Part shown: positions 1,313 to 27,287 of the stretch, in pieces | Layout: each line of letters begins with the position of its first letter | How positions within the stretch are numbered: position 1 is the first letter of the stretch | Assembly: GCF_036588685.1 (NCBI RefSeq) | Contig: NC_086375.1 | Location: 1,116,001-1,180,000 of the forward strand | Length of the DNA stretch: 64,000 nucleotides | Origin: Mytilus trossulus | Lineage: Eukaryota | Direction of reading: 5' to 3' | Translations under genes and position numbers: made by a program | The notes under the pieces: model-generated | Databases searched by the model: none | Seen by the model: the letters and a program-made list of their open reading frames with translations, nothing else | Told to the model about the DNA's origin: nothing

Positions 1313-1831
1313 GGTGCCAGTGGGAGACTATTTGACAAAAATGAGATGAACACATGGAGAGAAGATATACAGTTTGTGAAAATTGTGATGAAATATCTTA
1401 TACAAATTATTCTATCATGCAATACATCATCCATAGCAGGAATTGATAATCATTTCTCAAAAACTGAAAATGCAGTCACCAAGGGAGATAATTCAACCAT
1501 GAACAATGAAAGTAAGGGAGATAATTTGAGAACTGACAGAGAGAAATTACTTCACCTACAGACAGAGCTAATGGACAAGTTTCCAGTTGGTCAAAAGTTT
1601 AATTTAGAACCAATAACATCTGACCAATCAGAGAGATGGTCAACAATTCTTGATAGTTTATATAGTCATTTGACTTTAGTTTTAAAAGAAGACCTGGCAT
1701 CTTCAGGACCATTTAAAGATGTCAACAAATATATACATTGTAGTATCAATAAGTTAAAAGTAGACTTGGTAATTCAGCTATGTCAATGTTTGTCTGATTC
1801 TAGGATAAATTCTTTGCTTCAGGGGAAATAG
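1313..1831 (+). CDS. THADA: Terminal coding exon of a probable THADA orthologue (tRNA 32-2'-O-methyltransferase regulator, Trm732-like); upstream exons lie outside the window
   Basis: Acceptor tttacatattttacAG ends at 1312. The frame from 1313 (GASGRLFDKNEMNTWREDIQFVKIVMKYL...) is continuous with ORF 1346-1831 to TAG. LFDKNEMNTWREDIQFVKIVMKYL aligns ungapped with the recalled human THADA C-terminal segment LFEKAEVNFWAETLIFVKYLCKHL. AATAAA at 1842-1847. Confidence 0.68.
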   Translation, partial: GASGRLFDKNEMNTWREDIQFVKIVMKYLIQIILSCNTSSIAGIDNHFSKTENAVTKGDNSTMNNESKGDNLRTDREKLLHLQTELMDKFPVGQKFNLEPITSDQSERWSTILDSLYSHLTLVLKEDLASSGPFKDVNKYIHCSINKLKVDLVIQLCQCLSDSRINSLLQGK

Positions 1832-1855
1832 TAGATAGAGAAATAAAATATGCAA

Positions 1856-2145
1856 GCCACACAAATTTGAGTTTTAGTACTTTTGTAAAAAGACGCACAA
1901 GGGTTAACATCAATTAATATGTTTTCTGTAAACTATTTCATTTTTATTGGGGGAATCTGTTTTTAGAAGCAAAACTATTTTAAAAATATAATTTTATTGG
2001 TGAAGGTTAATATTGTTTTATTTGTAAAATATATGCTGCATTTTGTTATTTTATCTGCTGATACATTTTAGTTTTCTATTGATAAATTCTTCCCCAAAAA
2101 ATTTTGCATGTGATATGAAGGAACTAAAATTTGAGTTTGTGTGGC
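1856..2145. mobile_element. MITE remnant with 28-bp imperfect TIRs, just 3' of the THADA-like stop
   Basis: GCCACACAAATTTGAGTTTTAGTACTTT (1856-1883) versus AAGGAACTAAAATTTGAGTTTGTGTGGC (2118-2145); a similar end AGGCCACACCGATTT occurs at about 10230. Confidence 0.6.
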
Positions 2146-2194
2146 CTCATTTAAAAATGATATAACTCCTTATTTGCATTTATTTCTATGTAAT

Positions 2195-2337
2195 TAGATA
2201 TAGTAAGATGTGGTGTAAGTGCCAATGAGAGACAAGTATCCACAAAATACCAAAATGACACAGACATTAACAACTATAGGTCACCATACTGCCTTCAATA
2301 ATGTGCAAAGCCCATACTCCATAGTCAGCTATAAAAG
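2195..2337 (-). repeat. Family A copy
   Basis: Same consensus as 1046-1226. Confidence 0.85.
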
Positions 2338-3303
2338 TCTATGAATGGTATTGATACATGAGAGACATGTCTGCCTTGGGTGAATTCAAGTTAAAAGACA
2401 AATATGAAAACCCAGCCACATCATTTTGAAACCATCTTAAAGACTAGATTCAATGAATCAACCTTGTTATAATTTGCTTGGAAAATAATTCATGGTCACC
2501 TTTGGATTAGGGTTACAGAATGGAAATTATGAAAAAAAGGTTAGAGAAAAATTTGGGGAATAAAGAATGGAAAATAATGGGGTACTATAAAACAAAAGAA
2601 AATAGAAAATGGGCAAGAAAATTTTAAGAAAAGAAAACAACAACCAAAATATCAAAAAGTACAGGAATGAAGACAGCCCCCCTTTTTATCATCAAGACAC
2701 TAATATATGTAACAATACAACACTTTGAAACATAGAAAGTGATCTAATCAGCATGTGATATACTGCATAAAATGGAGGTTCTAAATCCCCATTGATGATG
2801 AAGTGTTAACTTGCTGTGGATTTATTATAATTAGTTGGACCAATTTGATGGTTGCAATGTAGCAAGCTAGTCTATAGTTTCAGAGGTAGTTCTGTTTGAT
2901 CCCAAACCAGATCACAAAAAAATAAAATAAATGGTATTTGCTACTTCTCCACCATGTATTAGAAGTTTGAGCAATAACTAGTGAACTTGTGTACCCTGGA
3001 AAAGTTGCTGATTTTTCTTTTCCATTCTCTTACTTAAGTTTCTTCAACTTCATGTTATGAACTATTACACAATGCTTATAAGCACAAACTCGGATCAAGT
3101 ACAACTATGTGTAAAGTCACTTTTACAGTTCTTTTATATATATCCTTTTATAACGTTATATGCAAGCAGGGTCATAATATATGACTCATGGAAACATTAC
3201 TCATTTATTTGTGTGTTATTTTACTGTCACAAATGGTGTTTAAACTATGCTGTGTTTGCACAGCACAGTTCTCAAAGGCAGACTGAGTGTTCACAGGGAT
3301 CAA

Positions 3304-3402
3304 AAGGGTGGTACAGTGACCTATAGTTGTTAATGTCTGTCATTTTGGTCTTTTGTGGATAGTTGTCTCATTTGCAATCATACCCCATCTTCTTTTTTAT
3401 AT
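3304..3402 (+). repeat. Family A copy (truncated)
   Basis: GTGACCTATAGTTGTTAATG...GTTGTCTCATT...CATCTTCTTTTTTATAT. Confidence 0.85.
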
Positions 3403-4638
3403 TAACTCATCAAATCAATTTAAAGCACACACAAAATCTTAAGAAAAGCACAAAAGACACAATCTACAGATCTGAGAGTAATCACAGTTACTGAAAGCAA
3501 AGTCGAAGCAAATAAGAACTAATTAAAAAATCACATATTTCTTGGACTAAATTATCAATCAGTAAGCAACCAACATCCAATGGATTTAGTGTAAAGTTGT
3601 TATTACAGTTATAAGAAAAACATGGCCCTGTGTCATGGCGAAATTAGATATTAATAGATGGAAGGACTGTGAAAAACAATAATATTTAGAAGGTTCTTAA
3701 TTTATTGACATTTTGTAATAATTAAAAAAAAAATAATTCAACAATTTGCATATGCTTTATTATAAATGTTAATGATAAGTTCTTTGGTAATTTTTACGGA
3801 ACAAGTTGAAACCACTGAAGATAATTTATGCTTTCCATAGAAATTGAAAGTGAGCAAGAGGAGATGGTTAATACTAGATCCAGAATTTCAAAATCAAACC
3901 ATGACGGATTTTCTTGCAACAATTGAGATTCGAAATTACAGAAAGCTGGTACCAATAGAGTCGGATATGCATACAGAAAATAACTGTTGGCATTTCGTCA
4001 TATATACTTGAAGATGCCTCTTATTGATATCTGTTCTGTACTAGTACTTACTATATAAAAAAATAGAGTCAAGTCAGAAACCTTGTCAGAATTTGTCTTA
4101 TGTCATATCCTTAATGTTATTTTGTCATTTGGAGAGTTTGGTATCGATGGCAGATCTTTGATTGGTTCTGCTTAATGTATAAACTGATATTTTGTTTTAT
4201 TAAGAACAAAGAGTACATATAGCTTGTCGTGTTGTATCGACTCTTGTCTATTGGCAAAGGCTGTAGTTTGTCCTCTTAGTGTAACATAATTTTTGCTGTT
4301 TTCCCTACATCTGCTTTTTCATACTGCACAATATATATGAAGGTTTTCAATTTGATTCATATATTTGGCAGTTATGATATTGACAAGTCACTCACAGACT
4401 TTAAATCAAAACGACGAAATGAGAGAAACAAACAGTATTCTAGATCTTTACTTGCCGCCAACAAAGGTTTCAATGCTAGCTAGTGGGGCAATATCCTTCA
4501 CCATAACTCAGCAATATCGATATTAATAATATCCCCCTACTCCAAAGATAGTTTATTTCTATGATCTTGCATACTTATTGCAAATTTTCAACTGCAAACA
4601 GATCATATTTCAGAAATTGCAATTTTTCTCTATTCAAA

Positions 4639-6185
4639 TTTTTTATACGACCGCAAAATAATTTTTTGGTCGTTATTGGTATCACGTTGGCGTCGTCGTC
4701 GTCCGAATACTTTTAGTTTTCGCACTATAACTTTAGTTTAAGTGAATAGAAATCAATAAAATTTAAAGACAAGGTTAATGAACACAAAAGGAAGGTTGGG
4801 ATTGATTTTGGGAGTTTTGGTCCCAACAGTTTGGAAATAAGGGCCCAAAGGGTCCAAAACTAAACTTTTTGTTTGATTTCATCAAAAATTGAATAATTGG
4901 TGTTCATTGATATGCCGAATCTAACTGTGTATGTAGATTCTTAATTTTTGGTCCCGCTTTCAAATTTGTCTAAAAGGGTCCAAAATTAAACTTAGTTTGA
5001 TTTTAACAAAAATTGAATCCTTGAGGTTCGTTGATATGCTAAATCTAAAAATGTACTTAGATTTTTTATTATTGACCCAGTTTTCAAGTCAGTCCAAATT
5101 GGGGTCTGAAATTAACTTTGTTTGATTTCATCAAAAATTGAATAATTGGGGTTCTTTGATATGCCAAATCTAAATGTGTATGTAGATTCTTTAATTTTGG
5201 TCCTGTTTTTTAAATTGGTCTACATTAAGGTCCAAAGGGTCCAAAATTAAACTAAGTTTGATTTTAACAAAAATTAAATTCTTGGGCTTCTTTGAAATGC
5301 TGAATCTAAACATGTACTTAGATTTTTGATAATGGACCCAGTTTTCAAGTTGGTCCAAATCAGGATTCAAAATTATTATATTAAGTATTGTGCAATAGCA
5401 ATAAATTTTCAATTGCACAGTATTCAGCAATAGCAAGAAATCTTCAATTGTACAGTATTGTGCAATAGCAAGAAATTTTCAATTGCACAGTATTGTTCAA
5501 TAGCAAGAAATCTTCAATTGCATAGTATTGTGCAATAGCAAGTATTTTCAATTGCACAGTATTGCGCAATAGCAAGAAATATCTAATTGCACAATATTGT
5601 GCAATAGCAAGAAATTTTCAATTGGAGTTCTTTCTTTGTCCAGAACAGTATTTGAATCAACTTAAAACAATATACAATGTATTTTCACTTTTACTACCAA
5701 CTGATAACTGATATCATAAATTAAAACAATCTTTACCATTCAGTGATAACAAGCACTTTTTTTTACATTTTAATATTTTATGATGTACTTAAATGAGCAG
5801 TTATTGTTGCAAACTCTATTAGAAATTTGAATTAAGATCAGTTTTGGAATAAGGGAAAGGGGGATTTGAAGAAAAAAATTAATGGGGGGAGGTCAATTTT
5901 TTTCTCATTTCAGATTTCATACATAAAAAGAAAATTTCTTCAAACATTTTTTTTGAGAGGATTAATATTAAACAGCATATAGTGAATTGCTCAAGGGCAA
6001 AAAAACATTTTAAGTTCATTAGATCACATTCATTTTGTGTCAGAAACCTATGCTGTGTCAACTATTTAATCACAATCCAAATTTAGAGCTGAATCCAGCT
6101 TGAATGTTGTGTCCATACTTGCCCCAACTGTTCAGGGTTCAACCTCTGCGGTCGTATACATATGCGCACTGTGGAGCATCTGGTT
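4639..6185 (+). mobile_element. Non-autonomous Helentron/HINE (DINE-1/pearl-like) element with internal tandem arrays
   Basis: Perfect 12-bp subterminal IR TATACGACCGCA (4644-4655) / TGCGGTCGTATA (6147-6158); partial inverted copy at about 4662-4675; (GTC)n microsatellite near 4692-4702; imperfect 3' hairpin 6160-6180; T-rich ends; internal ~250-bp and 35-bp tandem repeats. Confidence 0.8.
5386..5624. repeat. 35-bp tandem array (about 6.5-7 units) with a palindromic core, inside the HINE
   Basis: Unit AATTGCACAGTATTGTGCAATAGCAAGAAATTTTC; ATTGCACA-GTAT-TGTGCAAT is self-complementary. Confidence 0.9.
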
Positions 6186-6452
6186 ATGTCATAATGTTCT
6201 CTTCTCTATATTTTATCAGAAAGCCCATGTGTTACATAATCATACTGAACTCAAGTACCGGTATGTCTTAATGATGTATCTACACGATCTTATTATATCC
6301 TAAAATTTAAGGAGATTGCCAAATGCGGTTTATTAAAGTTTATAAGATTATGTGTATTACCCACGCTAACATCTTGACCATCGAATACAATATCTATATA
6401 TACGTCAGTACTTATGAACTCAAGTTTTAATATGTACATGTACAAATAACGC

Positions 6453-6589
6453 CGAAGGACGCCTCCGGGTGCGGGAATTTCTCGTTACATTGAAGACCTG
6501 TTGCCTGTTGGTGACCTTCTGCTGTTGCTTTTTTTCTATGGTCGGGTTGTTGTCTCTTTGATACATTCCCCATTTCCATTCTCAATTTT
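6453..6589 (+). mobile_element. Short retroposon copy (family B) flanked by a perfect 15-bp target-site duplication
   Basis: ATGTACAAATAACGC at 6438-6452 and 6590-6604. The body is near-identical to 775-880 and similar to 55958-56075. Confidence 0.85.
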
Positions 6590-6759
6590 ATGTACAAATA
6601 ACGCGAAAATAACTTAAGATCGTTGAATTTTAGGTGGATAGGGGGTAGCAAAATGCAAAACCGTACCGTTTCCAATGGACCATGCAGTGTCCAAAATAAA
6701 GAGCCAGGAAATACCCAAATGAAAAATGAAATTTTAAGGTTGAAGACTGACAACAGTCT

Positions 6760-6985
6760 ACATAGATAGCACTGCGCAAAAAAACTAACTAACAACACGA
6801 GCCCCATCCTAAAGTAGGGGTGATCGCAGTTGCTCTGGAAGGGTAAACTTATCCTGCTCCGCTCGTGGTCGTGGTACATGTCGTCATGTGGATCATGAAC
6901 GGTGTTGTCATTAACGAGGAACAGAAATAGAGACTTTGTCTACAAATGGAGAGCGTATCCGTGGCGATCTGTGACTCAGTCATTA
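6760..6985 (-). mobile_element. Decayed Penelope-like/retroelement-derived repeat (family C); related fragments at 15000-15080, 52240-52345 and 62250-62320
   Basis: ...CAACACGAGCCCC...GGGGTGATCGCAGTTGCTCTGGAAGGGTAA...TCCTGCTCC, similar to ...TCAGGTGCTCCGGAGGGGTTA at 52310. Classification is from recall only. Confidence 0.45.
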
Positions 6986-7029
6986 CAAAAATAAGATTGC
7001 TAGACACGTAATAATGTTATGCTTTCCTG

Positions 7030-7150
7030 ATACTGTTGTAATTTAAATATTAAACAAAGGAGACACCGTGGATTATCCCTACAGAAAAATGTATAGACCC
7101 TTGCAAAAAAGATGTGGAAGATAAAATTCATTTTGCGATAACATGTCCCA
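7030..7150 (+). pseudogene. Decayed LINE ORF2 C-terminal zinc-knuckle fragment
   Basis: Frameshifted translation NLNIKQRRHRG...CKKDVEDKIHFAITCP resembles the L-x-IETGR...C-x2-C...VEDEFHF-x3-CP end of non-LTR retrotransposon ORF2. Confidence 0.55.
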
Positions 7151-7793
7151 TTAAAGAAAAAGGCATAGAACTATACTAGTCCCATCAATTAAAAGCTTGA
7201 CTGGAGAAGACAAATTATATCTATACATTTATATTTACATCTTACAAATATGACATAACTAGAATTATGTTTTAATGGGTTATTGAACTATATATACTTA
7301 GAAAAAAAGTTAAAACGTTGTATAAGTTTACTACAACACTGTTACGTGTATACATTTTTTATGTTTCTTGTGGTTTCTTTTTTTTTTACATATAAATATG
7401 AATATTTACGGTAATACTTGATCATACATGTACATATTTTCATCATAAACTTGCCAAGAGTATCACCTTCTATATTTAATATATCATAAACATATCATTT
7501 TATGCATTATATATATTCTTATTACATAGTCGAATGTTTCACTTTCTTTGATGTTTTTTAGTAATAAATTCTATGTTTACGTAACAATCCTGCATTTGGA
7601 TGTGCTAACCTAATAAATTACTTGGCTATAAGCATCCATCATTAGCCAGATCAATAGATGCTTAAAACAGAAATAAGTCTGGAATATAATTCGATACTTT
7701 TTTCCTTTGCCAAAAAAAGGCAGATAACTGGGCAATGCTTTAATGATTGCAAATATTGTCTGTCTTGTTTATCTTCAAATTTCAACAAGCTTT

Positions 7794-8077
7794 GCTTGTC
7801 CCAAGTCAGGAGCCTGTAATTCAGTGGTTGTCGTTTGTTTATGTGTTACATATTTGTTTTTCGTTCATTTTTTCATATATTAATCAGGTCGTTAGTTTTC
7901 TCGTTTGAATTGTTTTATATTGTCTTATCAGGGCCTTTTATAGCTGACTATGCGGTATGGGCTCTGCTCATTTTTGAAGACCGTACGGTGACCTATAGTT
8001 GTTAATGTCTGTGTCATTTTTGGTCTCTTGTGGACAGTTGTCTCATCGGCAATCATACCACATCTTCTTTTTTATAT
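7794..8077 (+). repeat. Family A copy (longest in the window)
   Basis: GTCCCAAGTCAGGAGCCTG...GACCTATAGTTGTTAATG...ACCACATCTTCTTTTTTATAT. Confidence 0.9.
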
Positions 8078-9409
8078 TTGACTGCATCAGGGTTTAGATG
8101 AGGTTTTGTAGTCCAGAAAAGTGACGTATGGGTAATACGTGAAAAATAAAGGAACAAAGAAAAAAGCGGTAATTAGGTTGCTAAAATGATATCAATATCA
8201 AAGATAAAGAAACGAAAGAATTCGTTCGCATTGAACTGGTATCCTATTCCGGTCTGAGTAACCGTTGCCGAAGAGGTGATCTTTCCGATCTATTTATAAA
8301 CGGGGGTTAATTTGAAGTTGTTACCTTTAATTTGAGTCGGCGGACAGCTTCGTCGTTATTTTTAAGTACATCTTCAAAGGGAACAATTAGTTGTATTATT
8401 ATTAATCGCATAATTGTCTTAAGTACTTGAACTTTTACTTCCGTACAGGTTGCATACTTGAGAAAATCCATGATCAAAAACTTAATAAATTGGCTTAGTA
8501 AATTTCCTGTTAAAGATACTTGTAATTCTGTTTATAGATGTACTTAGAACATGTCATTAAGTATCATCTTTTTCTTTTCGGTTTGATTAAATATTACTTA
8601 ATAGTTTACACAAAGTATAACCCGCTAACACTTTACATGTATTACACATTCCCAAACAAAGTGGTGTATTTACAAAGCGTATAACCTGCTTAACACTTTA
8701 CATGTATTTACCTTGTATTTACAACACAGTCGCATTAAAATAGTGTAATATGTGTTTACTTTTATATGATAAGTATGGTTTAAGAAACTTGAGTGTAATT
8801 CTTACGTTTGAAGAATCTGTGAACGGAATTTGCACAACTTCTAACGGTTGTTTACTCTAGAATTAGCTTAGACGATTCTTAGAACGCAAATAGACATCGA
8901 ATTGTCAAATTTTTGTTGCAATACTCGAAAATATGGACAAAAAGTTGTGATATCCTAATCTTAGGCGGAACTTCCTTTTCGCACAATAAATCTCGTCATT
9001 GCAAACAAAAAATTAGTATATTCAACCTTTTATTGTAAGCTTAGTTAATCTTTGTAAATTCCCAAAAAACTGTTGTCTGCTGAAACGGCAGCAATTATGG
9101 TATATTTCAAAAGTTTCTTTGTCGCGCCAAGGTTGTCATATGTAATAATAACAATTACCACACAAATTTAAAACAATTATGACATCTTTGTTAAAAGTTA
9201 AGAGAAAAAACAACAAAAATATAACTTTTTTTTAAAATTCGACTGAAAGAGTGACAGATTGTAATACTATATCTATCTATTTGTTTATTATTGATTTTAG
9301 TGATATCATGATTATACCTTTTGATTTGTTTATATCTACCTGTATTCGTCACCCATGTCATGTACTGGACAAGATAGAAATTCCATGACATCCTTTGTTT
9401 ACAAAAAAA

Positions 9410-9700
9410 TACAAAACCCAGATGACCAAAGTTCGATATTATCTTTTTATCATACTAGTACTACCTGTGGCTCTAATCGCTCGCCATTGTCAATACAAAT
9501 TGGAAATAACGCTATCACACTGATATTGAACAGTAGCGGTGATAACGGATCTCCCTGTTGCACTACGTTCATTGATTTTATCATACGACGTGAGGTATCT
9601 ATCGACATGTCATAATATCAATTAGATGTCAAATTAATATCGCCAATTTTTAAATGATTTTGTTTCTATAACAATAATTTGGGTCGTATATTATTGCAAA
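9410..9700 (-). pseudogene. Decayed LINE reverse-transcriptase fragment
   Basis: The minus strand of 9522-9569 translates NVVQQGDPLSPLLFNI, the non-LTR RT motif (GVxQGDPLSPLLFN). The flanks carry stops, and a degenerate YADD-position segment (KDNIELWS) follows. Confidence 0.65.
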
Positions 9701-10921
9701 TTATCCCATTAATATTAAATAGATTCTCTGGATGGTGGGGTGCATTAGTGACACGCGATACAACGTATCTGGGTGCATGAAATTGAGAATCTGCATTTTG
9801 TTGCTGCCAAGCAGATCCCGTGTTCAACGGACCATAAAAGTACTGTATTGACATATAGTACTGTCGATATTCATAGTAACCTACAAAATAAATAATTGAA
9901 GCAAGGATGTGTATAGTAAGACTATTCAAATCCTTGATTGTATTATAATATTTCCATGGATAAATACACATTGTTTTTCTTGCCATGGTTGATCGACATA
10001 TAATAGTTTTAGGCAATACGGCTAATGATATTATTATGTGTACGCAAATATATACATTATTCAAAAGACTTATTTCACCTCAATGAAAGAGGCTATCCAA
10101 ATGAACAGTCCCCACGTGTAATGGTGTCCGAAAACATGTTATTGCGGGTAATTTCATTTCACATAGTAAAAAAAAAAAATTGTATAAAATTAGCCGATTT
10201 TGGGGGAATAATGTTCAAACTTGATTCTAGGCCACACCGATTTCATATTTGATTTTAGATTTTGTTATTAATATTTGTACATGATTATTTTTTTTTAAAA
10301 GAGGTCGAAGTTAAGTGTATTCATTAAAGTTACTTACTTTCTTTTCATGTGACAGTGCATACAATGAAAGTGGGTTTAAGTATATAGAACTTGAATGTAG
10401 AAAACACACAATTAAAAAAAATATCAATATATCATCAAGGAATTGTATATTTGAATTCCTTGATATCATGCACTGAAAACTACCTCGTATCCACATAAAA
10501 AAATATATAAGGTAAGAAAACAAACAAGTAAACAACGGAGACTTATTAGCTTCACACAAATGAAATTTCATAACAAATAAATTGTTCTATCTCGAAGTAA
10601 CACTGCGCATCAATGCAAAATAAATATGAAACTAGTAGAACGTTTATCTGAAAAACTTTGATTCGAAATATAATTAAAAAAAAAATAATAATAACATGTA
10701 ATTTAGTTAAGCTCCAAGCACATACGTATAAGTGCCGGAAAGATATTTTTCAAATAGACCGATCATGTTAAAAAAAAAATTATATGTAGGTCGTAGAAGA
10801 AATTGTAATTCATCAAGGGCATCCTTACAACGTTCGCTGCTTCCAAATAATAATTTCACAAATTGTTCAGACAAGTGTGAACGTTGTTGACTAACCTCAG
10901 GGCATATCACTTGTATTATAT

Positions 10922-11124
10922 TGTCATCCAGTTACTCTTAAAGTAAAATAACGTTTTTTTTAAAACACAAATTGTTTTCCCAATACGAATATACCAACAA
11001 TCTGTATGGATAACCATGGAAGTATTACAGTGTCATCCAGTTACTCTTAAAGTAAAATAACAAATTTTTTTACAGCACAAATTGTTTTCCCAATACGAAT
11101 ATACCTACAATCTGTGTGGTTAAC
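10922..11124. repeat. Tandem duplication, period 109 bp
   Basis: TGTCATCCAGTTACTCTTAAAGTAAAATAAC...CCCAATACGAATATACC at 10922 and 11031. Confidence 0.9.
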
Positions 11125-11149
11125 TGATATATCTGAAGATTTAAATTTA

Positions 11150-12602
11150 CACAAGTTTAGAGTGTTGCCATCTACATGCACGAAGCATCAAAGTTTAGTC
11201 TGACGTCCATACTCCGACCGGACGTGACTGCGAACTAGAGTGTTATCCTGCCCTCATCCTTAGCATGGCGTTCCATCCAAATCGGAAAAGTCCGGATGAT
11301 CATATTATACTTAGTTATATTTAATACTGACCAGTAGTCTACACTTCATTTAACTTCAAAGGTCAAACCAAAAAAGAAAAGGCAGTGGCTATTCGTCCGG
11401 CTAGTCGGACAAATAGTCAAAAATGTCTATTCATCCGGCAAGCCGGACAAATAGCATTTTTACGGTTTTTCGCTATTTGTTCGGCCAAAAACATAATAAT
11501 GAAGATATAGCTTTGTGTTTTGAAGGTTTTAAATAAAGCACGAGTTGTTTTAAAAATTATATGGTCTAACATCGTTTTATGAAAAAGAACTCATTCTAAT
11601 AACAAAAAAACTCTTTTTTGTAGTTCTGCCTATGAATTTCATGTAAGGTAAAGAGTCGGGCCAATCATTATTGGCTTTATCTATGATTCCAAAAGATCCT
11701 TAATTTATTGTTTCTGTGAAGTTTGGTTAAAGGAAGGTCAATATATGATTATGCACGATTCTTCATTTTAATTGTTCTGCGATTTTTAATTCATAGGAAA
11801 TTAGAGAAAAGGGCAAGCACGTGTAACCTGTCCCCAAAAGTGGGATTTTGTTTTCGATAAGATTGTTTTAGAAAAAAATGTGTATTAGATACAACAGAAA
11901 AAAGGGGGTTATCCCAACCCTGGTGTCTTATTCACAGCATATCAGTATGTTCATATATCTCCGTTGTAGTAGAACTTGAAAATAATGCATCCAAGCAAGT
12001 TTGATATAGTTTTTTTCATTCAAGCAAGTTTGATATAGGATTTTTTTCCGAATGCGTTTTGCCTCCATAAGGTAAATGTGGGTAAATCATTAATTTCACT
12101 TCGATTTCAGGCTTATTCCTCACAGTTTACATGTACACGCTATTGTTCTGGAATCACTCCTATATAGTACATTTGTTTAAAGCAATCACGTTCTCTCAGG
12201 TTTTCTCTATGACATCTTTAAATATAAGTAACGATCTCCAATTCTCAAAACGTCCATTGCATACGCGCGTGTGTTATCCGACACCTCAACCGGGACACTT
12301 TCCGCGTCACATGACACTTTTGTTGATATTGAAGATTTGCGCATCCGCAGATGGATGGCCGGACGAATAGAGATTTTAAACTATTCGTCCGGCTAGCCGG
12401 ACGAATAGACACTCCGAAAAGAAAACTAAGTCTAATATGAACATCCGGACTTTTCCCATTTGGATGGAAAGCCATGATAAGGATGGTCGTCCGTTTGAGG
12501 GCAGGATAACACTTTAGTTCCCATTCACGTCCGGTCGGAGTATGGACGTCAGACTTAACTTTGATGCTTCGTGCATGTAGATAGCAACACTCTAAATTTG
12601 TG
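11150..12602. mobile_element. Non-autonomous DNA transposon / foldback element with long (about 250-300 bp) TIRs
   Basis: 11150-11307 is the reverse complement of about 12433-12602, and 11384-11440 of about 12356-12414. Termini TA|CACAAG...TTTGTG|TA (putative TA TSD). No transposase ORF inside. Confidence 0.85.
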
Positions 12603-13301
12603 TAAATGAAAGCATTTCAAAAACTCCTGGAAGGGTTTCCGACCCTATAAATAATACTCTCATTTTTTACAGGCAATCTAAAATTCACGCCTTTTCATCC
12701 GGTCGAACTATTTGACAGAATCTACCTATTGGTAAGATTGTCAATTTGTTCTCGTCCTGACTGATATTATCGCCGCATGCTAATATTTGCCACTGTTCGT
12801 AAAAAGAGGGGTCTTAGCTCATAGACACTATCCTTTTTTCCCCGAGCTTAACTTCCTAAGGGCTGGTTTAAGGAGAGAGGGGTCTTTGCTAATAGTAACT
12901 ATTTCTTTTATGTTTTGCCAGAAATAATTTAACGTCAATTGCATGTATACATTAATAGAAACAAATCTGCTAATTACTTTCTATAAAAAAAAATAAGTGT
13001 TGACGAGACCTGTGCTTGCAGATTAATTAAACGACTACACAAGAAAGAATACGAGGAATGTAAATTGAAACATATCTATACTACGTGTTGTTGTGGTTCA
13101 CCTTTACATTTTACATTCTGGATGAAAACTAACCATAAATCTTATTTCCCAAGCAGCCCTATCCGCTTTCAACCGTTTTTTTTTTCATTGTTGTCGTTTA
13201 TTATGATCATGGCTTATATATGACTTAAATATTTAAAATTGAACTACTCCAGCTTTGACATTTTCTTGCTTTTACAATTGAAAGCTTTCGATTCTAGACA
13301 C

Positions 13302-13908: not shown

Positions 13909-13962
13909 CATTTCATGGAATGTCTGAACCTCGATGTCCATCGGCCAGTCGATTACCACAAC

Positions 13963-17000: not shown

Positions 17001-19778
17001 CAATCACATTCTATGCAGTGTATATATTAAAAAAGAAGATATTTTTCATTCTGTCTAAGAGTTGAACAATAAATAGGATTTACGAACTTAATTCGTTAAT
17101 AAATTAATCATTATTTCACTCAATGTAGGTAAAAATACATGTGCCTGTCTTCATGGTAGATTTCCTATTAATTTAGGCTTCACTTTACTGATGTAGACGT
17201 ATTTATGTTCGAAATTTATACCTACATGATTAATGTACATGTTTAACTAAAACATGTTATACGTCTGTACATAAAGTTATACGACCATAACACAGATTTC
17301 AAGAACTTTCCTGTTCCATTTTTTTATAGATTGTGTTAGAAAAATCTTTGCTGTATCTGGGACTATTATGTCCCAGGCTATAGTATATATGTTATTTTTT
17401 TTTATAAATTACAAGAACTTTTGGCTATTGGTATTTATTTTAGGTTACTATGTTATTAGAAATCCTGGCTTTCAAATATTTAGGTTTTCGAACGTTCTTG
17501 ATGAAGGAACATTCAGAAAAAGGCGCTACTGATGCAAAAATCAAATCTTATAACTTTTTTGGTGTAGAATCCAAACAAGAAAAACATGACAATATTTACA
17601 AACATACCGACTATTAACCGACATTTATATCATATAAGTATATCAAATATCATTAGAAAGTTTGGATGAGGAGGTGACTCTTTTGTAAATTTGAAAGTTA
17701 AAGTTAAAATATAAGAAAAACAGAAAATTTATATTACATAATTCTAGTGTTTCTAGATGCTCTAAAATAAATTTCTCAAGAAGATGGGATACGGGTTAAA
17801 TACATGCCCATCCAAGATCGAATGGTTGTTCTAAAAATTGAAAAACGGATACATTTTCCCTTTGAACAAGGCAAAAGAAAATACAGGAAAATTCACCCTT
17901 ATCCACCGTGCATTCGAAACAAATTTCAAAATTGGCGTGAAAACTGTACAGTGCATTCACAAGATAAAACCGGAAAATTTCGCTCCTTCAGGAAGGAGTT
18001 GATTTAAGAAGTAAATAAAGGGGAAAGATAAAAGAGATGATAACATAAGTGCGTAATTAGGACAATTAATCTCTTGATACCACCCGTGTATACCAAAACA
18101 TACCGAAACGAATTTTGTGATGAGAATATAAACACGATGTAAGGACCCCTAGTGGTTACACTGCTTTGACTACTGATGATCCAACATTAACACCTTGGTG
18201 TGGTGCTCCAAAACCAAGTGGTCCCTGGAGAAAGCTTACCAATAACATCAACAAACTTCAAACGAACAATACAATAATGGTGTGTTATTATTACAATCCT
18301 GGAATACACAGGCGTCTTGTTATCACCACTCAGGGAGTGACTTTGATATCAAGATGGAAAAACAAAGAAGAAAAGAAACAATAAAGAGAATGTAAACAAA
18401 CAATTATACGTTTATAATTAACTCCAAATGTTTCTTCGGATAACCACGGTTTTGTATGGAATCCGAACCTTTTAGTTTACAAGCCTTTTCTCTCACGTTC
18501 ACTCATCCATATTTCATTTCTATGTTTTACCTACAAAAAACACTTCAAAGTGATGCATGTCTTGCATGCCCCCTACATGCGTGTTTAATTTCATATATAT
18601 AACCAGCTTGTGGTTTATCAACTTCAAATTGATAGTTTATTGTTTAGATACTGAGAAAAATACCATCTTTTCCCACGTCATTTACTGCTAAATAAAAAAA
18701 TAAGCATTTTACAAAACATTTCCATATGTTCTCGCCACGATCATACTATTTTCCCACCATTAAAACGCATGCATTAAATAACTCATATCAGTGACGTTTT
18801 AATAATGCCCCCATAGGTACCCCAACCTGCAATGCACATAACAAGCATAGGTCGGAATGACATGTGTTGCAAACGACGTATACTTCATGCAAAAATCAAA
18901 CGACTGGCGTGGGAAATTTTGTCTTAAAGAATGTCGTTAAAATACTTATATCTGTTCAGCATATAACCCTAATCATATTAATATCTCTAATTGTTTTAGT
19001 TAGGAAACGACATGTAACATTCTTAGATTTGAGCAGCGAGATTTCTAACGAGATTTATCAGATTTTTTTAAAATTGAGTTATTAATCATGTTGGATTATT
19101 AAGTGTTATATAATATTACGGTGATATTGTAAATAGTTGTTTAACCTGGTGCTACAGTTTATGAAATTGTAAGATTCTAAGATCCCTCATCCAGAATTTA
19201 ATAGTAGAGTAACCGTTTTCTGCTAGCAAGAAAACTGACAAATCTTACATGGTCAAGATTCACACCGATTCCACTAACCAATACGCCGAAGAAGTCATTA
19301 TGTTATTTCAATATTAAAAATTTCAATAGTTTGCATTCAATTGGACAGAAATCGTGCTTCTCCGTCACCCGACTAGGTTTGTGTACTCGTACGAATCTGG
19401 ACGAGTTTCTCACATCGTATTCCCTAAATGTATTTCTGTACAGGAAACATAAGGGTTACAACAGAGACTACATGTTTTAATATAAGTAATACCTTCTAGA
19501 ATTAGTTCGAGATTTTTCTGACGTGTAACGACCTCAAGTTTCGGTGTTTTGATGGGGTCTAACATAATCCAGAAAATAAGGTCGTCTTTAGAGGAATTTA
19601 GGACTACCTAGTTATTGACTATTGAAGTCCTTTAATGGACAATTTTGAATTCTAAAGAAGTATCAAGCAATCTGTCGAAGACTATGTTTGCATCACTGAG
19701 TAAAAGCAATAGACAACAGCATGTTGGAATTTCATAATATATATATCCATATATATTATACTCTCGTCTAAGTATACA

Positions 19779-19830
19779 TTAAAGTCCACAACATTTCACC
19801 AGTTCTATGGTCGGCACCACGGTGTCTGTT
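19779..19830 (+). pseudogene. Tiny Penelope-like RT C-terminal fragment
   Basis: Translates LKSTTFHQFYGRHH, resembling the recalled LKSSFRKFYGRHH motif of mollusc Penelope-like elements. Confidence 0.4.
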
Positions 19831-21192
19831 AAGTCTGATCAAGGAAGTTGTTTCTGCATTCTGAACTTGCTAAAAACATTTCCTTCTCACAGATACTTTG
19901 TGACTATATTTCCATCCATCTGGGCTCACTTTTGGGTTTGCCATTGCTAGCATAAGACATGCGGTGAATGATACAAACATATCAAAATTTAATTCTTTAC
20001 GCGTTCTTTCTTCATTCACTTGCTTCGCACTTCTTTATTCTATCCCGTAAAATGATTTATAAATTAATTTAAGTTTTTTAAGACGTATTCTATTTACGAG
20101 GTTTTGCTTTCATTTTTTTTTTTCGTTTTTCTTGATTTCGATATTCCAAAGTGGTATTTTTTCGTGATTGTGTCTTAAAAGAGAAAATGGACAAACACAC
20201 CACTTCAGAAAATGTCCAAGAGATAACAACCCGACCAAAGATCAGTTTATTAATGTATTAATATGCAAATGTCATATCTTATTCAGCTTTGTTTTTTTAA
20301 TGTTAGTACATTTGTACGTAGTAAACATATATGTATTGTTTTGATCTCAAGTTTTCTTCTGGTACAAAGTCGACTTGAAAAGTGTGCTTCGGCCTTGGGA
20401 GGTATCCATGCAAGCTATAGATCCTCGGCTTCACAATACTAAAAAGTATGCATAGCCCGAGTGTTATGTCATATTTGTTGTTGTGGAATAATTAACAAAT
20501 CTAAAGATTTTTCATGTTTATGCAGAAAACAAAAGATAAGAGAAAACTTAGTAGCGTGAGAAAATCACTCCCACGCCACGGAGAATCTTACTACTAGATA
20601 CTACATCATGCTTAATGTCTGCATCGCAGTGTGCAACAGTAATAAGCGGGAAACATATACGATAATTCTTTATGACAAAAGTTGCCAAAATGATGCTCAT
20701 GTTGAAATCTCATTTTGCCGCGTTAATTAGATTACAATAACGATTTACGATTTATCAAGGAAAGTTACACTAAAATCAATCTAAAATCATTTGCATTGAC
20801 ACCTCTTGAAAATTGTCTGATATTAACATTTGAATGTAATTAAAATTTTAAAAATCGTGGCCATGCTTATTACACTAAAACAATATTCAAAGGTTGATAA
20901 TATATGGGTTGATGTAAAAGTATATGGATGTTGGGTATACTCCTCTAAGGGAAGGAAACCAAACAACACAAAAATAGAAAAGTCATTTGATGGTATAAAC
21001 ATTCCGGCACACTTCTAATATGTCAAGCTAGCTTGTGGTTAATTCAACAGACTACCAAGTCTTTATAAAAAGTTTAAAAAAAATACAAACCACTTGAGAC
21101 AGACACGCATAGGTAGAGCTTTTTTACGTTCAGTCTTTCGTTAAATATATTATTTGTTCTCTGGATGGAAAACTCCGATACTGTTGATCCTG

Positions 21193-21310
21193 ATGGGCTT
21201 TGCTCATTGTAGAAGGCCGTACGATGACCTATAGTTGTTAATGTTGTGTCATTTTGGTCTTTTGTGGATAGTTGTCAATTGGCAATCATACCATCTCTTC
21301 TTATTTATAT
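21193..21310 (+). repeat. Family A copy (truncated)
   Basis: Same end as 7794-8077. Confidence 0.85.
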
Positions 21311-21969
21311 GCACTTGTTTCGTCCAAATTTTCAAAGTTTGGTGCCTTTAATTTGTCTGCATTCATATTGATTATGTTTTTTACTTTCAATTAAGATATG
21401 TAAAATCTTTAGTTTAGGAGACAAACAATTGTTTTATACTTAATCAACTGTAAAGGAAAGAAATTTGGTTCTATAAGTTTTTCTGGACCAAAACGCATTA
21501 AAAAAGATATAAAAATTACTGGAACTAATTTGGTTCCAGACAAGGACGATGGCATCGGCCTAAATTACAATTACAGTAATTACTGCACCAGTCTCGTGTA
21601 TATTTGACAGGCAGTGATCTTACACATTCACACGACATGTAGTGTGTATCAATTATTCTGATACGTCAGGTACATGTATGATTGACACATGTGTGGCATA
21701 AAACATGCACTTGACACGGGGGATAATCTATGTGATAATCAGCATCATGTATCTGGAATAAATTACATGTAAATTGGTCAGATATTAATTTGTTCTTTTT
21801 TTATGAAGCAATAAAATATCACAATTGTTTTGGATTACGCAATAATTTGTATACTAAACATTTTGAAGCTAAAAATATAAAAATTCACTATGGTTTCATC
21901 AAATCCTTGGTTTTAATAAATTGATGGGGGTTTCTTTTGTAGATATGAATTTATTATGAAAAATTAATG

Positions 21970-22116
21970 TGTCTCAATTATCAAAACAAATTGTAAATAC
22001 TCGATTGTCTTGAGAAACGATAGGGCTTTTCTTTGTAGTTACAAATTTATTATGAAAAAATGAATTTGTCTCAATAATTAAAAACAAATTGTAAATACTC
22101 GAATTGCCGTGAGAAA
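21970..22116. repeat. Diverged direct duplication, period about 97 bp
   Basis: TGTCTCAAT..AAAACAAATTGTAAATACTCGA twice. Confidence 0.75.
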
Positions 22117-22920
22117 TGCTAGAAATAACCATAAATTCTAATTCTGTCTTTTGAAATATGGCGGTATTCGATTTTTCGTACGTTTCAAAAGTATTTGACG
22201 TATACATGTAGATATAAAAGGTATTTCCAATATTTACACGTAGATAACTATTATTAGCATCCTATAAAAAGACAAAACAAATCTGTGAAATTATGGAATT
22301 ATTCCTTTTGAGTAAATTGGCTTGTTTTTCCAATAAAGACCGTCTAATTAGTAGTGTAAACAAGATTAAATTAGATATACTTTGATCTTTTAACAACCAA
22401 TCAAGGCAGTATAAGCTCGCAATTCTCTAGGTCTTCGTAGTTTTTTTTTTATGTTTTCACGCCGAAGCAAAAACTGTCATTGATAAATAAAATGTCTATT
22501 CATTAAAGCTAGACTTCCAGACTGGGTTTTACTTACATTGTTTCTCTTTGTTTGTTTTAACAATAATTTTAACGTCTTAATTAGAAAATAAATCTTAAAG
22601 AGTAATACGTGACAATTTATAATTGATCCATTGCACTGTACTGTCTTTTATCCTAAGTTTGATTTTAAGGACGCATTATTTTAAAAGTCTGATCTCTTCG
22701 TGCAATTGTTATCTCACAGCCCTATGAGTGAAATCTAAGACTTCTATTCTTTGGTTAAATGCACAATTTTACCCAGACATATTGATACCAAACAATTAGA
22801 CAAGGAAATAAATAAAAAGAAAAGTAAATTTCAATAAATATTATTTTTTATTAAAAGAGATGTTTACTGATCGGAAGTTTATAAATATTAAATCATAAAC
22901 AATAAAAAAAATACTATCAT

Positions 22921-22925
<5 letters not shown>

Positions 22926-22954
<29 letters not shown>
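22926..22954. repeat. (TA)n microsatellite
   Basis: About 14 TA units. Confidence 0.95.
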
Positions 22955-22956
<2 letters not shown>

Positions 22957-24876
22957 CTTCTAAATCAGTACATACTTAGGCCCGAAGGAAGAAATAGAAA
23001 AAAATCCATATATGAAAAGTATAGTGTCAGGCGAGAAAATCTTATTAAAAAGGTCAACAATAATTCAAGGATTAACTCCCTTTCGCCATAAATTTATTTC
23101 AAATGATGACAAGAAATGTATTCATTGATTAACGCGATATAAGAAATCTACCTGCAGTGTAATACAAGTATGACATCTGAGAGGAATTTTACACCGTAGG
23201 GATTCTTGAAAAATTATCCAAATGATATTCATAACATGACATATTTCGTATCAGAAAATTAAATATGTATTGTGTGACGCAACTGTATACCTTTTCAAAA
23301 TCCAGGTAATCTTCGATGATAAGACCGTTACCTGCTGTGAATTCAGGTGTCAGAAATTATCCGTAAATATTTCAATCTATTGATAATTCCTATCTGATTT
23401 TGACATTTTATTTCGTGATTAAGGTTTACAAATCAGGTGGATGTTAATTTCGAAATTGACAATTTTACAGCTTAATTATCTGAATAGATACAGGATATAG
23501 GAATGTCATAAAATTCATAATATGTGATATCTATTTTTTTATTTTTCACCAAAATTACGTGTTATATAGTGAAGTCATAAGTCCGCTGGTAAATTAGTCA
23601 AAATGAGTAATTAGAACATATAAACATAGCCTACCTCAAGGCGTATGTCAGAGAATAAATTATCATAAATTAACAAAGAAAAATGAGCATTAGTAATTAA
23701 AAATTAGACCGGATGAGACAAATTTTCTCACTTATACTCAAAATAAATTTGAAGCCCGCGAGTAAAACCATATATTGTATTGCAGTGGGGAAGTTTTACT
23801 GGATTCCCAATTAACCGCATAATTAACTTTTAATGAATTATTAAAAAGTCCTGTTAATTTGTAATTAACATGTACCGGTATAATATTTTTTTTAAAAGTT
23901 TTATGGTTTCAATTTATGGAATGGATTCAACATACGTGATTTTTCAATTACCAGTTACTTATTTCAGAGTTTGGATATTAAAAAAAGTGTCGAAATTTTT
24001 TTTTTAAAGTTTTGCAAAAAAATGTTTTATTTGTTGACTTTTCTGAGAAACTTCAGTTTGATGGCCATGTCTAAATGGATTGGCCATTGATATCCCACGT
24101 CTCTTTCTTGTACTATTTTCTTCTCTCACTCTTATATATGTGTTATATAAGTATATAGTATCTATATTAGTATATAGAAGTTATATTGTTTTAGTCGGAT
24201 CTGTGTTCGATCTTTATTTGCTTGTGTTTTCTTTGTATAAACCGTTGTTTGTCTTATTGGCCCTAGTATAACCTTTTTATATCAAAGAATCGATCATGTA
24301 TAATACATGTATTAAAAAAATAACATACACCGAAAAATGATATCATATTTTCTCAGCACAGCTAGTCAAAAGCAAAAAATCATGCCGATACCTTCTAACT
24401 GGTGTAAGTGTCTTCTTAATTTCTGTATACTATTTTTTTTCTTCCATAATTGTGGATTAACAACCTTGTCCCTTTTGCGTAAAAAAAATGTTGATGTAGC
24501 TGTTCACGAAATCCCGGTTCATACAGAAGAACGCAGTCGTGAAGATTGTTATAATTTTAAATTTAAACGCACTCGATAGATCTTTTACCTATCAAGAAGG
24601 TTCAATAAATTTTGAAATATTTAAAAGTAAATATTGTGATATGAACGAGAGATATATTAGATAATTAATAAATATTGTAAACAAACAATCACGCCATCAG
24701 ACAGCAGACTTTGTACGTCGTCTGGCCGTTGTCTGACCTAATCACCTGACATTTCATCCTCGTCATTCATAAAAAAAAAAAAAAAATCAAAATATCCAAA
24801 CTTCATTTAAGTTTAGTTTATAAAATTCATCAACTCCAACTCTTAACATAATTTATACAAAACTAGCTACTATAGA

Positions 24877-24898
24877 CACGTGGTTTTTCGCGCCAAAA
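24877..24898. promoter_or_regulatory. E-box CACGTG adjacent to an overlapping E2F-type site TTTTCGCGCCAAAA
   Basis: CACGTG 24877-24882 and TTTCGCGCCAAA 24886-24897, about 570 bp upstream of the predicted TSS in otherwise AT-rich DNA. Confidence 0.45.
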
Positions 24899-25337
24899 TT
24901 GTGAGGGAATTTGCGGGAATAACAAATACCATGTGATGTGTATTGAACCAGTATTATTTTATTTAAAATGAATCAACTTTTCTGCAAATAGATTGGAAGT
25001 CAAATGTCTCCGCTACACTGAATACACCCATTGTTGTAAATCCATCTGAAACACACCACCCCCTTTAAAGAATCTAGTGACATCATTGACTTTCAAGGTC
25101 GAGCCAACCATACGTTCAAAAAAGCTTTCCTTATACACTAACTAAAACAGAATTCTGAAAATAAAATCCATACACACGTTAGAAAATCATAAAAGTTGCT
25201 TAAACTAAAACAAAATGTTAAAAAAATCCATCAATTTTTATTAATTATTTCAAATGTTCAAATTCTGTACAGAAAAAAATTTCTACACACTTGTTTACAA
25301 CAATTTCGTAATACTGATAAAATTACTTTGCTGTTGT

Positions 25338-25465
25338 CCAATCAAAATCGTCGACCGACTTATTCAATTATCTGATAGCTCCTCCTCCTTTACTGTAAAT
25401 AATTACTTCAGTAAGCCCCGCCTCCTTTGGGATATATACGCATCGAAACCGCATGTTCAACAGTT
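25338..25465 (+). promoter_or_regulatory. Core promoter of the ZFP36-family gene
   Basis: CCAAT 25338-25342, GC box GCCCCGCCTCC 25415-25425, TATATA 25433-25438, and Inr-like CAGTT 25461-25465 (A at 25462, 29 nt after the TATA start). No ATG between the predicted TSS and 25538. Confidence 0.7.
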
Positions 25466-25537
25466 GTGTCAAAGTAATCATACCTAGTGGATAAACCTAC
25501 AATTAACAGTATTATTAATATTATTCAAAAGGACATT

Positions 25538-25591
25538 ATGTCTAGTGCTCAAATATCTGCATTTTATGATGTTGGTGATGTTCTTCAACAG
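25538..25591 (+). CDS. ZFP36L: ZFP36/TIS11-family gene, coding exon 1 (MSSAQISAFYDVGDVLQQ)
   Basis: ATG at 25538, 18 codons, then a strong donor CAG|GTAAGC at 25591/25592 (phase 0). The peptide resembles the Tis11B N-terminal motif of vertebrate ZFP36L2 (MSTTLLSAFYDV...) and ZFP36L1. Confidence 0.9.
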
Positions 25592-26210
25592 GTAAGCAAC
25601 AATATTTAAAACTTTGAAAGTTTAATAATTTAAACTGATGAAGTGATGAAAAGTATCACGATTTATTGATGTTATTCTTGGATAGTATGTATTTAAAAAG
25701 TTGTGTAAATAAATGTCAATATTATTGGAATTATTTTATCTTAAAATTATAATATCTTTACTAAGAATCAATTCTCGATTTGAATTATGGTTTATCAATA
25801 TTGCAAACATGTTGACAAAGTTTATTTCAACGTTTGAAACCGAAATCAATTTCGTAGTCTTTTAATTTCAAATAGTGTTATAATGTTATTGTAGTAAATT
25901 CGAACTTCGAACGCTGTTGTTATGCTATTTTTGTTTGCGTATGCAAATGAATATGTCAGATTAACATTTAAAACATTATCCCCGTTGATTTACTTAAGTA
26001 TTTCATTTAAAAAAGGATTTATTATAGATTTTTTTATATCGGTCTTTTCAATACGCTATTATCTGGTCATTTAATATCCCGTCAAATCGCCTTACACACA
26101 AGTACACTTTAATCTCTCGTGTATTATCAACCACCTTGCAGATAAGACACCTTGTTTCAAGATGAAATAAGCAAGCACATGTTATAGCCTTGTTTTATTT
26201 ATAATTGTAG
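25592..26210 (+). other. Single GT-AG phase-0 intron (619 bp) of the ZFP36-family gene
   Basis: GTAAGC donor and T-rich tract + TAG acceptor; splicing joins the two exons in frame. Confidence 0.9.
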
Positions 26211-27287
26211 AATCGCAGAAACCAACAGATGAAACAGTTCAATGAAAGAAGGGCTACAATTGGTGCTATGGTGTCTAGAAATGTAAATACACATGGTATG
26301 CCTTCAAATTCGTTCATTACAATTACACAACAGAATGGTGTTTCAACAGATCTTAATCAGAATGAGAATTTACATCGCAAGTTGGATAGGAGTATAAGTG
26401 AACCGATCGGTGACCGAGCTTTGAACAGTTTGAGTATTCAGAGGAATAATGTTAACTCGAGCCGTTACAAAACAGAATTGTGCCGACCTTTCGAGGAAAG
26501 TGGTCATTGTAAATATGGGGATAAGTGTCAATTTGCTCACGGTGGACATGAACTTCGTACATTGAATCGTCATCCCAAGTACAAAACAGAACTTTGCCGT
26601 ACATTCCATACAATTGGATTTTGTCCGTATGGACCTAGGTGTCATTTCGTTCACAACGAAGATGACCAGAAGTTGGCCGAGATGGTCAAGAATCATGAAG
26701 CCATGTTGGCAGCACGTCGCAATCCATCTTCATCCTCAGCATCAACAAACAATTCCGCAAGAAGACCTTCAAATATTTCATTCGCAGGATCTGATTACAG
26801 CCCTCCGTCCAGTGACAGTCCGAGTCTTAGTCCGGCTTCCAGTGACGACTTCAGCCGTCTTTCATCTTGTTCAAGTAGTATGTCTGGAAATTCATCTACT
26901 TCCAGCAGCCCTGTGTTCAATTATTCCGCTGATCTTCAGACAATTGCTTCATTGCTTCAGCCTTTGAATGTTCAAACTCAAATGAACAATGTAAATAACT
27001 CTTCAATTGACTCTTTGAGCCAGCAGCTTAATGCAATTTTGAACTTGTCGTATCAACAACGCAATATGAACAACAACCACAACGTGTTCGGGGATTCATG
27101 GGACGTGACACCAGCACCCCCTTCCCCTCCAGATAGTATCTCAGGCGATAGTGTGGGCAGTGCTAGCAGCTTAAGTAGTAGTGGCAGCTTTTCCTCATCT
27201 CAAAACACTTACGGGTCTCCATTAGACATTAGCAAGCAGTTGCAGATTCGACTTCCAATATTTAACACGCTTTCCCAGGACGATTAA
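26211..27287 (+). CDS. ZFP36L: ZFP36/TIS11-family gene, coding exon 2: tandem CCCH zinc-finger mRNA decay activator (ZFP36L1/L2-like); spliced protein 376 aa
   Basis: Acceptor ttgttttatttataattgtAG ends at 26210, and AAT CGC AGA AAC CAA CAG runs in frame into ATG 26229. Two CX8CX5CX3H fingers with RYKTEL/KYKTEL lead-ins, a DRSISEP motif, a Ser-rich region and C-terminal [12 protein letters not shown] (CNOT1-binding motif). Confidence 0.97.

Follow-up and report, generated by a model that had tools for sequence, protein, structure and literature searches.

A PLEKHH-THADA-ZFP36 gene block in the mussel Mytilus trossulus and its likeness to human 2p21

In human 2p21 the gene THADA lies beside ZFP36L2, and the locus described here raises the question whether this neighbourhood is older than the split between protostomes and deuterostomes and, if so, what has held the genes together. 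The stretch analysed, called the window below, comprises 64,000 nucleotides of the mussel Mytilus trossulus (assembly GCF_036588685.1, contig NC_086375.1, abbreviated C3; C3:1,116,001-1,180,000, plus strand, in a 1.3-Gb genome) and contains no N. The tRNA 2'-O-methyltransferase FTSJ1/Trm7 has THADA as its HEAT-repeat partner, and ZFP36/TIS11 is an activator of mRNA decay that binds AU-rich elements (AREs). THADA is among the most frequent loci in genome-wide association studies, including those of type 2 diabetes, polycystic ovary syndrome (PCOS), cleft lip, prostate cancer and inflammatory disease. In the mussel, a PLEKHH gene stands head-to-head with THADA, and THADA is followed tail-to-head by ZFP36. 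Judged from two lineages, this three-gene block likely goes back to the last common ancestor of protostomes and deuterostomes.

The predicted 3' end of THADA was located at the beginning of the window:

1313-1831, plus strand: THADA last coding exon (172 codons, stop codon at 1829-1831), carrying the conserved C-terminal motif RLFDKNEMNTWREDIQFVKIVMKYL
1832-2145, plus strand: minimum extent of the THADA 3' untranslated region (UTR); spliced contigs reach 2141-2145 and stop at a highly repeated element

A terminal exon had been read here on the plus strand in the first-pass annotation, and this reading was borne out by the frame, the stop codon and the exon boundary. The plus-strand frame at 1313-1831 translates as GASGRLFDKNEMNTWREDIQFVKIVMKYL..., ends at TAG 1829-1831 and is preceded by an AG acceptor at 1311-1312 with a pyrimidine-rich tract before it. 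For the mapping of splice joints, contigs from four public runs, which belong to three studies and bear two organism labels, were placed on C3:1,113,000-1,118,900. These runs were only guessed to be RNA, and the canonical intron-shaped joint detected in all four is as expected of transcripts. In each run one contig skipped 2,409 bases with GT..AG ends; the skip starts where the penultimate exon ends (...TMLKWMETDTKEEV) and lands in frame with GASGRLFDK at window position 1313. A second joint of the same intron, detected in the runs X4 and X7, landed at window position 1328, and the exon's first 15 bases were replaced by 14 foreign letters. Neither genome copy contains these letters (the second copy, on contig C42, is described below); the variant, which uses the same splice site, probably comes from a divergent allele or from a sister species.

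The transcript contigs break at interspersed repeats, so that 2141-2145 marks the least extent of the THADA 3' UTR. Such repeats were observed at about 1-350, 740-1300 and 2120-2320 of the window, flanking the terminal exon on both sides, with a thousands-fold contig cover in all four runs. A similar element (tgccaatgaga...acaactata) was observed twice, at about 1070-1135 and at about 2221-2280.

The Pfam scan of the 172-residue exon translation gave no match, and neither did the direct phmmer comparison of the exon with the PDB sequences. A library of 1.8 billion representative proteins, in which the homologue search covers lengths of 0.55-1.75 times that of the query, yielded no more than three short relatives, including P0003/P0013 (E 1.2e-4). 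All three are open reading frame (ORF) calls on mollusc contigs or transcript contigs, with no full-length THADA among them. The match between the exon and P0003/P0013 resulted in an E value of 3.1e-6 in the genome search. When the C-terminal transcripts P0013 and A3 served as library queries, they brought up nothing but further fragments.

The transcript P0013, a contig of 348 residues and a member of the cluster, extends upstream of the motif and matched residues 1708-1884 of human THADA (PDB 8y2o chain A) with an E value of 1.5e-4. The alignment contains LFEKAEVNFWAETLIFVKYLCKHL, which is, letter for letter, the motif that had been named for the C-terminus of human THADA in the first-pass annotation. 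With a profile of the two related transcripts P0013 and P0135, the match covered residues 1617-1884 of human THADA (E 4.5e-6), and the next matches, designed or generic repeat proteins, were a thousand-fold worse (5e-3). With a profile of the terminal exon only, human THADA was the sole PDB match up to E 10 (E 0.045).

The remaining part of the gene, which was expected upstream of the window, was recovered there. Three Pfam families of THADA were found in order, exon by exon and over the cut-off, on the plus strand of C3, and the same order was observed on C42. These domains lie 100-127 kb upstream of the window exon and on the same strand:

C3:990,245-991,917, plus strand: TPR_Trm732 (Pfam)
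C3:1,008,724-1,012,761, plus strand: DUF2428 (Pfam)
C3:1,013,442-1,017,186, plus strand: TPR_Trm732_C (Pfam)
C3:1,097,666-1,097,863, 1,109,952-1,110,059 and 1,114,769-1,114,912, plus strand: further THADA exons (mapped by P0013 and P0135)

The further exons are collinear with the Pfam-recognised THADA exons and then with the window exon at 1313, and the span of the mussel THADA is at least 127.6 kb. The exon 1313-1831 might instead belong to a gene other than THADA, for example a separate gene with a similar short motif. Such a possibility is favoured by the empty direct comparisons with PDB and Pfam and by the un-annotated stretch of about 80 kb that follows the last THADA exon recognised by Pfam and precedes the next recognised one; the splicing seen in contigs concerns the last intron. 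It is opposed by the spliced partner exon, which aligns with the HEAT-repeat region just ahead of the motif in human THADA. All the recognised pieces are, moreover, collinear, on one strand and identically arranged on C42, and searches of the genome with the exon and its transcript relatives revealed no other THADA C-terminus. A non-THADA origin of the exon is for these reasons considered very improbable. Due to the spliced joint, the collinear chain of exons and the match of the transcript profile to human THADA, 1313-1831 is assigned to the Mytilus orthologue of THADA as its last coding exon.

Similarly to the THADA/Trm732 family (human THADA, PDB 8y2o), the mussel gene contains the three family Pfam domains and the LF[DE]K.E.N.W motif near the C-terminus; the difference lies in the last approximately 140 residues, which are poorly conserved. 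Human THADA is named 'tRNA (32-2'-O)-methyltransferase regulator' in PDB 8y2o, and the mussel protein was assigned by its sequence to this family, which is characterised by binding and activation of the Trm7/FTSJ1 methyltransferase acting on tRNA position 32.

The second gene of the window is located downstream of the THADA exon:

25538-25591, plus strand: ZFP36/TIS11 exon 1, coding part (18 codons, MSSAQISAFYDVGDVLQQ, then a GT donor)
26211-27287, plus strand: ZFP36/TIS11 exon 2 (358 codons plus stop; ORF 26229-27287)
27310-27358, plus strand: predicted ARE cluster by motif count (five ATTTA pentamers, including one UAUUUAU core, within 50 bases), opening the ZFP36 3' UTR

A ZFP36-family gene on the strand of the THADA exon had been noted earlier and was confirmed by its two CCCH fingers. 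The tandem zinc-finger domain lies at about 26466-26657 (Pfam zf-CCCH, 1e-19, two stretches). Both fingers have the spacing C-x8-C-x5-C-x3-H, are 18 residues apart and follow (R/K)YKTEL (RYKTELCR and KYKTELCR, respectively), and the finger columns are invariant in the alignment with eight animal orthologues. The N-terminal SAFYDV and the C-terminal RLPIF motifs of the protein are common to the Lingula and fish orthologues; RLPIF is the NOT1-binding motif. The protein is 96% identical to the ZFP36L2-like protein P0015 of M. californianus, the N-terminus of which is identical across the joint of exons 1 and 2. The gene measures 1.75 kb from ATG to stop, with one intron, and, its copy on C42 aside, this ZFP36/TIS11 locus is the sole one detected in the genome. 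The finger pair, SAFYDV, RLPIF, the two-exon structure and the ARE-rich 3' UTR are all shared with the ZFP36/TIS11 (tristetraprolin) family, and nothing unusual was detected. In comparison with the three human genes of the family (ZFP36, ZFP36L1 and ZFP36L2), the mussel has one, which is presumably the single pre-duplication orthologue of the vertebrate paralogues.

The ATTTA cluster is a putative AU-rich element and a candidate site of autoregulation. The ZFP36 mRNA carries the kind of element that is bound by its own protein family. Putative TATA-like and CCAAT-like motifs were observed about 100-200 bases upstream of exon 1.

The two genes of the window are separated by the following interval:

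1832-25537, no strand: spacer from the THADA stop to the ZFP36 start codon (23,706 bases, AT-rich, GC 0.28-0.36, with tandem and interspersed repeats)

The earlier estimate of about 23.6 kb without genes agreed with this interval, in which no ORF with a Pfam match, no Rfam family and no tRNA were found; a gene of short exons could escape these checks. Tandem repeats with units of 124, 35 and 110 bases were observed in the spacer at window positions 4847-5624 and 10913-11124.

The contig C42 (4.5 Mb) holds the same genes in the same arrangement on the opposite strand, with the PLEKHH-THADA-ZFP36 region at C42:3,417,887-3,572,674. C42 is collinear with positions 1-29,000 of the window at 82-96% identity and with many indels, and the spacing between THADA and ZFP36 is about 5 kb longer on C42 than on C3.

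On the other side of THADA, 140 kb of upstream DNA were read for neighbouring genes. The following features were determined:

C3:854,600-890,600, minus strand: gene of PLEKHH1/2 (MAX-1) type (PH, PH-like, MyTH4, RA_2, FERM, coiled coil and Ser-rich exon)
C3 878.9-879.2 kb, minus strand: PH domain of the PLEKHH gene (Pfam, 1.2e-7)
C3 863.8-862.0 kb, minus strand: three MyTH4 exons of the PLEKHH gene (Pfam)
C3 861.3 kb, minus strand: RA_2 of the PLEKHH gene (Pfam)
C3 857.6 and 855.8 kb, minus strand: two FERM_M exons of the PLEKHH gene (Pfam)
C3:940,502-942,307, 954,473-956,008, 967,946-969,550 and 983,074-984,741, minus strand: intronless B-box-type zinc-finger ORFs of 500-600 residues, in a cluster spanning 940,500-984,750
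C3 973.6-981.2 kb: pair of long ORFs resembling a retroelement, in the interval from PLEKHH to the first recognised THADA exons
C3 975.8-982.4 kb: long tandem array, between PLEKHH and the recognised THADA exons

The MyTH4 search detected exons at C3:862,786-863,696 on the minus strand, with a counterpart on C42. The PLEKHH domains run in descending coordinates on the minus strand. A 358-residue Ser-rich exon and two coiled-coil exons, the latter recognised by eye, lie further 5'; second-PH-like exons, also recognised by eye, occupy the interval from PH to MyTH4. Nowhere in the 140 kb upstream of THADA was a motor signature of myosin or kinesin found. By its predicted domains, the upstream neighbour has the architecture of PLEKHH1/2 (MAX-1) and is oriented head-to-head with THADA. 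The 5' exons of PLEKHH are at about 890.5 kb and the first recognisable THADA exons at 988-990 kb of C3; the N-terminal exons of THADA must fall between them, as do the B-box ORFs, which may be either intronic or intergenic.

In the human locus, we take THADA and ZFP36L2 to lie both on the minus strand and PLEKHH2 to be divergent on the plus strand. ZFP36L2 is presumably located about 4 kb beyond the 3' end of THADA, in comparison with about 23.7 kb in the mussel. A published site at hg19 43,449,231, about 4.5 kb from the transcription start site (TSS) of ZFP36L2, is consistent with this assumed arrangement. The neighbourhood itself is documented: ZFP36L2 is described as 'adjacent to THADA' in PMC8886408, and intergenic intervals are labelled 'PLEKHH2 THADA' and 'ZFP36L2 THADA' in PMC5524838, from which it follows that human THADA is flanked by PLEKHH2 and ZFP36L2. 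A cattle study lists HAAO, ZFP36L2 and THADA consecutively. Of the tail-to-head arrangement of human THADA and ZFP36L2 claimed in the first-pass annotation, the adjacency was confirmed by the papers, and the orientation follows from the strands assumed above.

With the human order taken from these papers, the three orthologous families follow in the same order in human and mussel, with THADA in the middle, and the orientations match as far as the assumed human strands are correct. THADA is a very long gene in both species. The differences concern the surroundings. In the mussel, PLEKHH is separated from the recognised THADA exons by the B-box ORFs and the retroelement. In human, HAAO follows beyond a gene-poor interval past ZFP36L2, whereas the mussel HAAO is megabases away on the same chromosome: it was detected (Pfam 3-HAO) at 10.06 Mb of C3, on the same strand and 8.9 Mb from ZFP36, and on C42 at 1,869,185-1,870,539, 1.55 Mb from ZFP36. 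Haplotypes that differ in structure, a duplication or an error of assembly are possible causes of the unequal distances on C3 and C42.

Given the assumed human strands, the mussel and human blocks share the same neighbours in the same relative orientation in two distant phyla. The case for common ancestry is stronger than was known at the first reading of the window, because a PLEKHH-type gene stands head-to-head upstream of THADA, as PLEKHH2 does in human; HAAO, too, has its place on this mussel chromosome. In human, PLEKHH1 and ZFP36L1 presumably both lie at 14q24, and if they do, the block would be older than the genome duplications of vertebrates. Several points nevertheless weigh against inheritance from the common ancestor. 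The comparison comprises two lineages only, mussel and human, and the human strand orientations are assumed. The copy on C42, being an alternative haplotype (haplotig) or a recent duplicate, is no independent evidence. The adjacency of PLEKHH and THADA may not be strict due to the intervening B-box ORFs and retroelement. THADA, ZFP36 and HAAO share a chromosome in both species and probably belonged to one ancestral linkage group, which raises the chance of accidental adjacency. In Drosophila, Tis11 and THADA are presumably located on different chromosomes, which would be a loss in that lineage.

The adjacency could be a coincidence, produced by random shuffling within the chromosomes of a shared linkage group. 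The position of HAAO on the same mussel chromosome, 1.5-9 Mb off, corresponds to macrosynteny with local scrambling; two lineages only were compared, and a scan of very many windows yields a few chance matches. However, two independent neighbour relations agree at once in order and relative orientation: PLEKHH is head-to-head with THADA, and ZFP36 follows THADA tail-to-head. By reasoning rather than by a computed test, random shuffling in a linkage group of a few hundred orthologues would give an oriented adjacency in well under 1% of cases per pair, and two of them far more rarely. Since two oriented adjacencies are expected so rarely by shuffling, inheritance is the better reading even when the size of the scan is allowed for, and coincidence is rated as quite unlikely.

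Metagenome contigs were scanned as a further source of linked genes. With the profile of the THADA exon no relative was detected in them, and with the ZFP36 alignment 80 loci were found, mostly on contigs of 1-6 kb. The tblastn search of these ZFP36-bearing contigs with all the THADA pieces gave nothing significant, and the ORFs upstream of the three best-flanked ZFP36 loci had no Pfam match; in both cases the contigs are too short to inform.

As regards the persistence of the block, the leading candidate, put forward tentatively, is a genomic regulatory block. The cis-regulatory elements of ZFP36 would be situated in or around the very long THADA gene, breaks between THADA and ZFP36 would be selected against, and THADA would be a bystander. 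The two genes have the corresponding shapes: THADA is at least 127.6 kb long and intron-rich, and ZFP36 is compact. According to PMC3514665 (Irimia et al. 2012), bystander genes are long and intron-rich and target genes compact. The effect reported for THADA-intronic polymorphisms on human ZFP36L2 expression (PMC8886408) fits the mechanism as well, as circumstantial support. The mussel pair resembles the ancestral microsyntenic pairs and genomic regulatory blocks presented there, as a long, intron-rich, housekeeping-type gene stands beside an unrelated compact regulator with few introns, a pairing retained in different phyla. Unlike the genomic regulatory blocks treated in that text and by Kikuta et al. 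2007, with a transcription factor or signalling gene as the target, the mussel pair would have an RNA-binding protein in this role.

The nature of the target and the positions of the known human enhancers count against this mechanism. ZFP36 is an RNA-binding regulator and no classical developmental transcription factor. The position hg38 chr2:42.95 Mb is assumed by us to fall in the gene-poor interval beyond ZFP36L2, not inside THADA. The core of a human haematopoietic super-enhancer attributed to THADA/ZFP36L2 has been placed at this position, and the source paper puts the haematopoietic super-enhancers within the topologically associating domain that also contains ZFP36L2. An enhancer validated by CRISPR interference lies about 4.5 kb from the ZFP36L2 TSS and is also outside THADA.

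The ancestral block might equally have been kept by inertia, that is, by slow rearrangement in both lineages, with no shared enhancers or regulatory constraint. Molluscs and vertebrates both retain many ancestral microsyntenic pairs according to PMC3514665, the best-mapped human ZFP36L2 enhancers are not within THADA, and the mussel spacer is filled with repeats, with many indels separating its two copies. On the other hand, the premise of the same text is that most neighbour pairs were broken during more than 500 million years per lineage. Single-nucleotide polymorphisms in THADA introns (hg19 chr2:43.69-43.77 Mb), 230-270 kb away, were reported to affect ZFP36L2 expression in human as expression quantitative trait loci (PMC8886408), and THADA is unusually long in both species. 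Inertia is on this evidence a possible explanation that we hold to be rather unlikely, and about as probable as the regulatory block.

In its widest form, the regulatory-block reading would extend to all bilaterians: THADA and its flanks would carry enhancers of the ZFP36 family, the regulatory needs of a post-transcriptional regulator, not those of a transcription factor, would have preserved the linkage over more than 500 million years, and ZFP36L2 would be the route by which many of the associations assigned to human 'THADA' (type 2 diabetes, PCOS, cleft lip, inflammatory bowel disease/systemic lupus erythematosus) act. This extended form is doubtful. If THADA, ZFP36 and PLEKHH have been together since before the split of protostomes and deuterostomes, this would be evolutionary evidence, of an independent kind, for the locus as a single regulatory unit, and it would add a case of an mRNA-decay factor as the protected target. 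If the block is confined to two slow-evolving lineages, it would be one more of several hundred retained pairs, with little further consequence.

Human studies propose ZFP36L2, not THADA, as the likely effector in cleft lip, and ZFP36L2 was nominated for PCOS; ZFP36L2 as the effector of THADA-locus associations is thus already in the human literature. Conserved microsynteny itself is a well-known kind of finding, of which the mussel THADA-ZFP36 block is a new case. In full-text searches of a literature library, no paper was detected that connects THADA to microsynteny, and THADA, ZFP36L2 and synteny came together in none. THADA and ZFP36 are absent from the main text of PMC3514665, and a prior listing of the pair among its 593 pairs is possible.

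Of the other neighbours of the human locus, DYNC2LI1 was sought by the DLIC search, of which the sole match was a locus on C6, probably a cytoplasmic dynein paralogue. In the 36.7 kb past ZFP36 (27300-64000), no RNA family and no tRNA were found, and the ten ORFs of at least 90 residues had no recognisable domain (three of the ten were scanned against Pfam). This gene-poor stretch recalls the gene-poor interval beyond human ZFP36L2. It includes a minisatellite at window positions 46442-48205, with a 30-base unit in about 58 copies of 81-85% match, which gives rise to spurious repeat ORFs on both strands (HPDMSSCYQY...).

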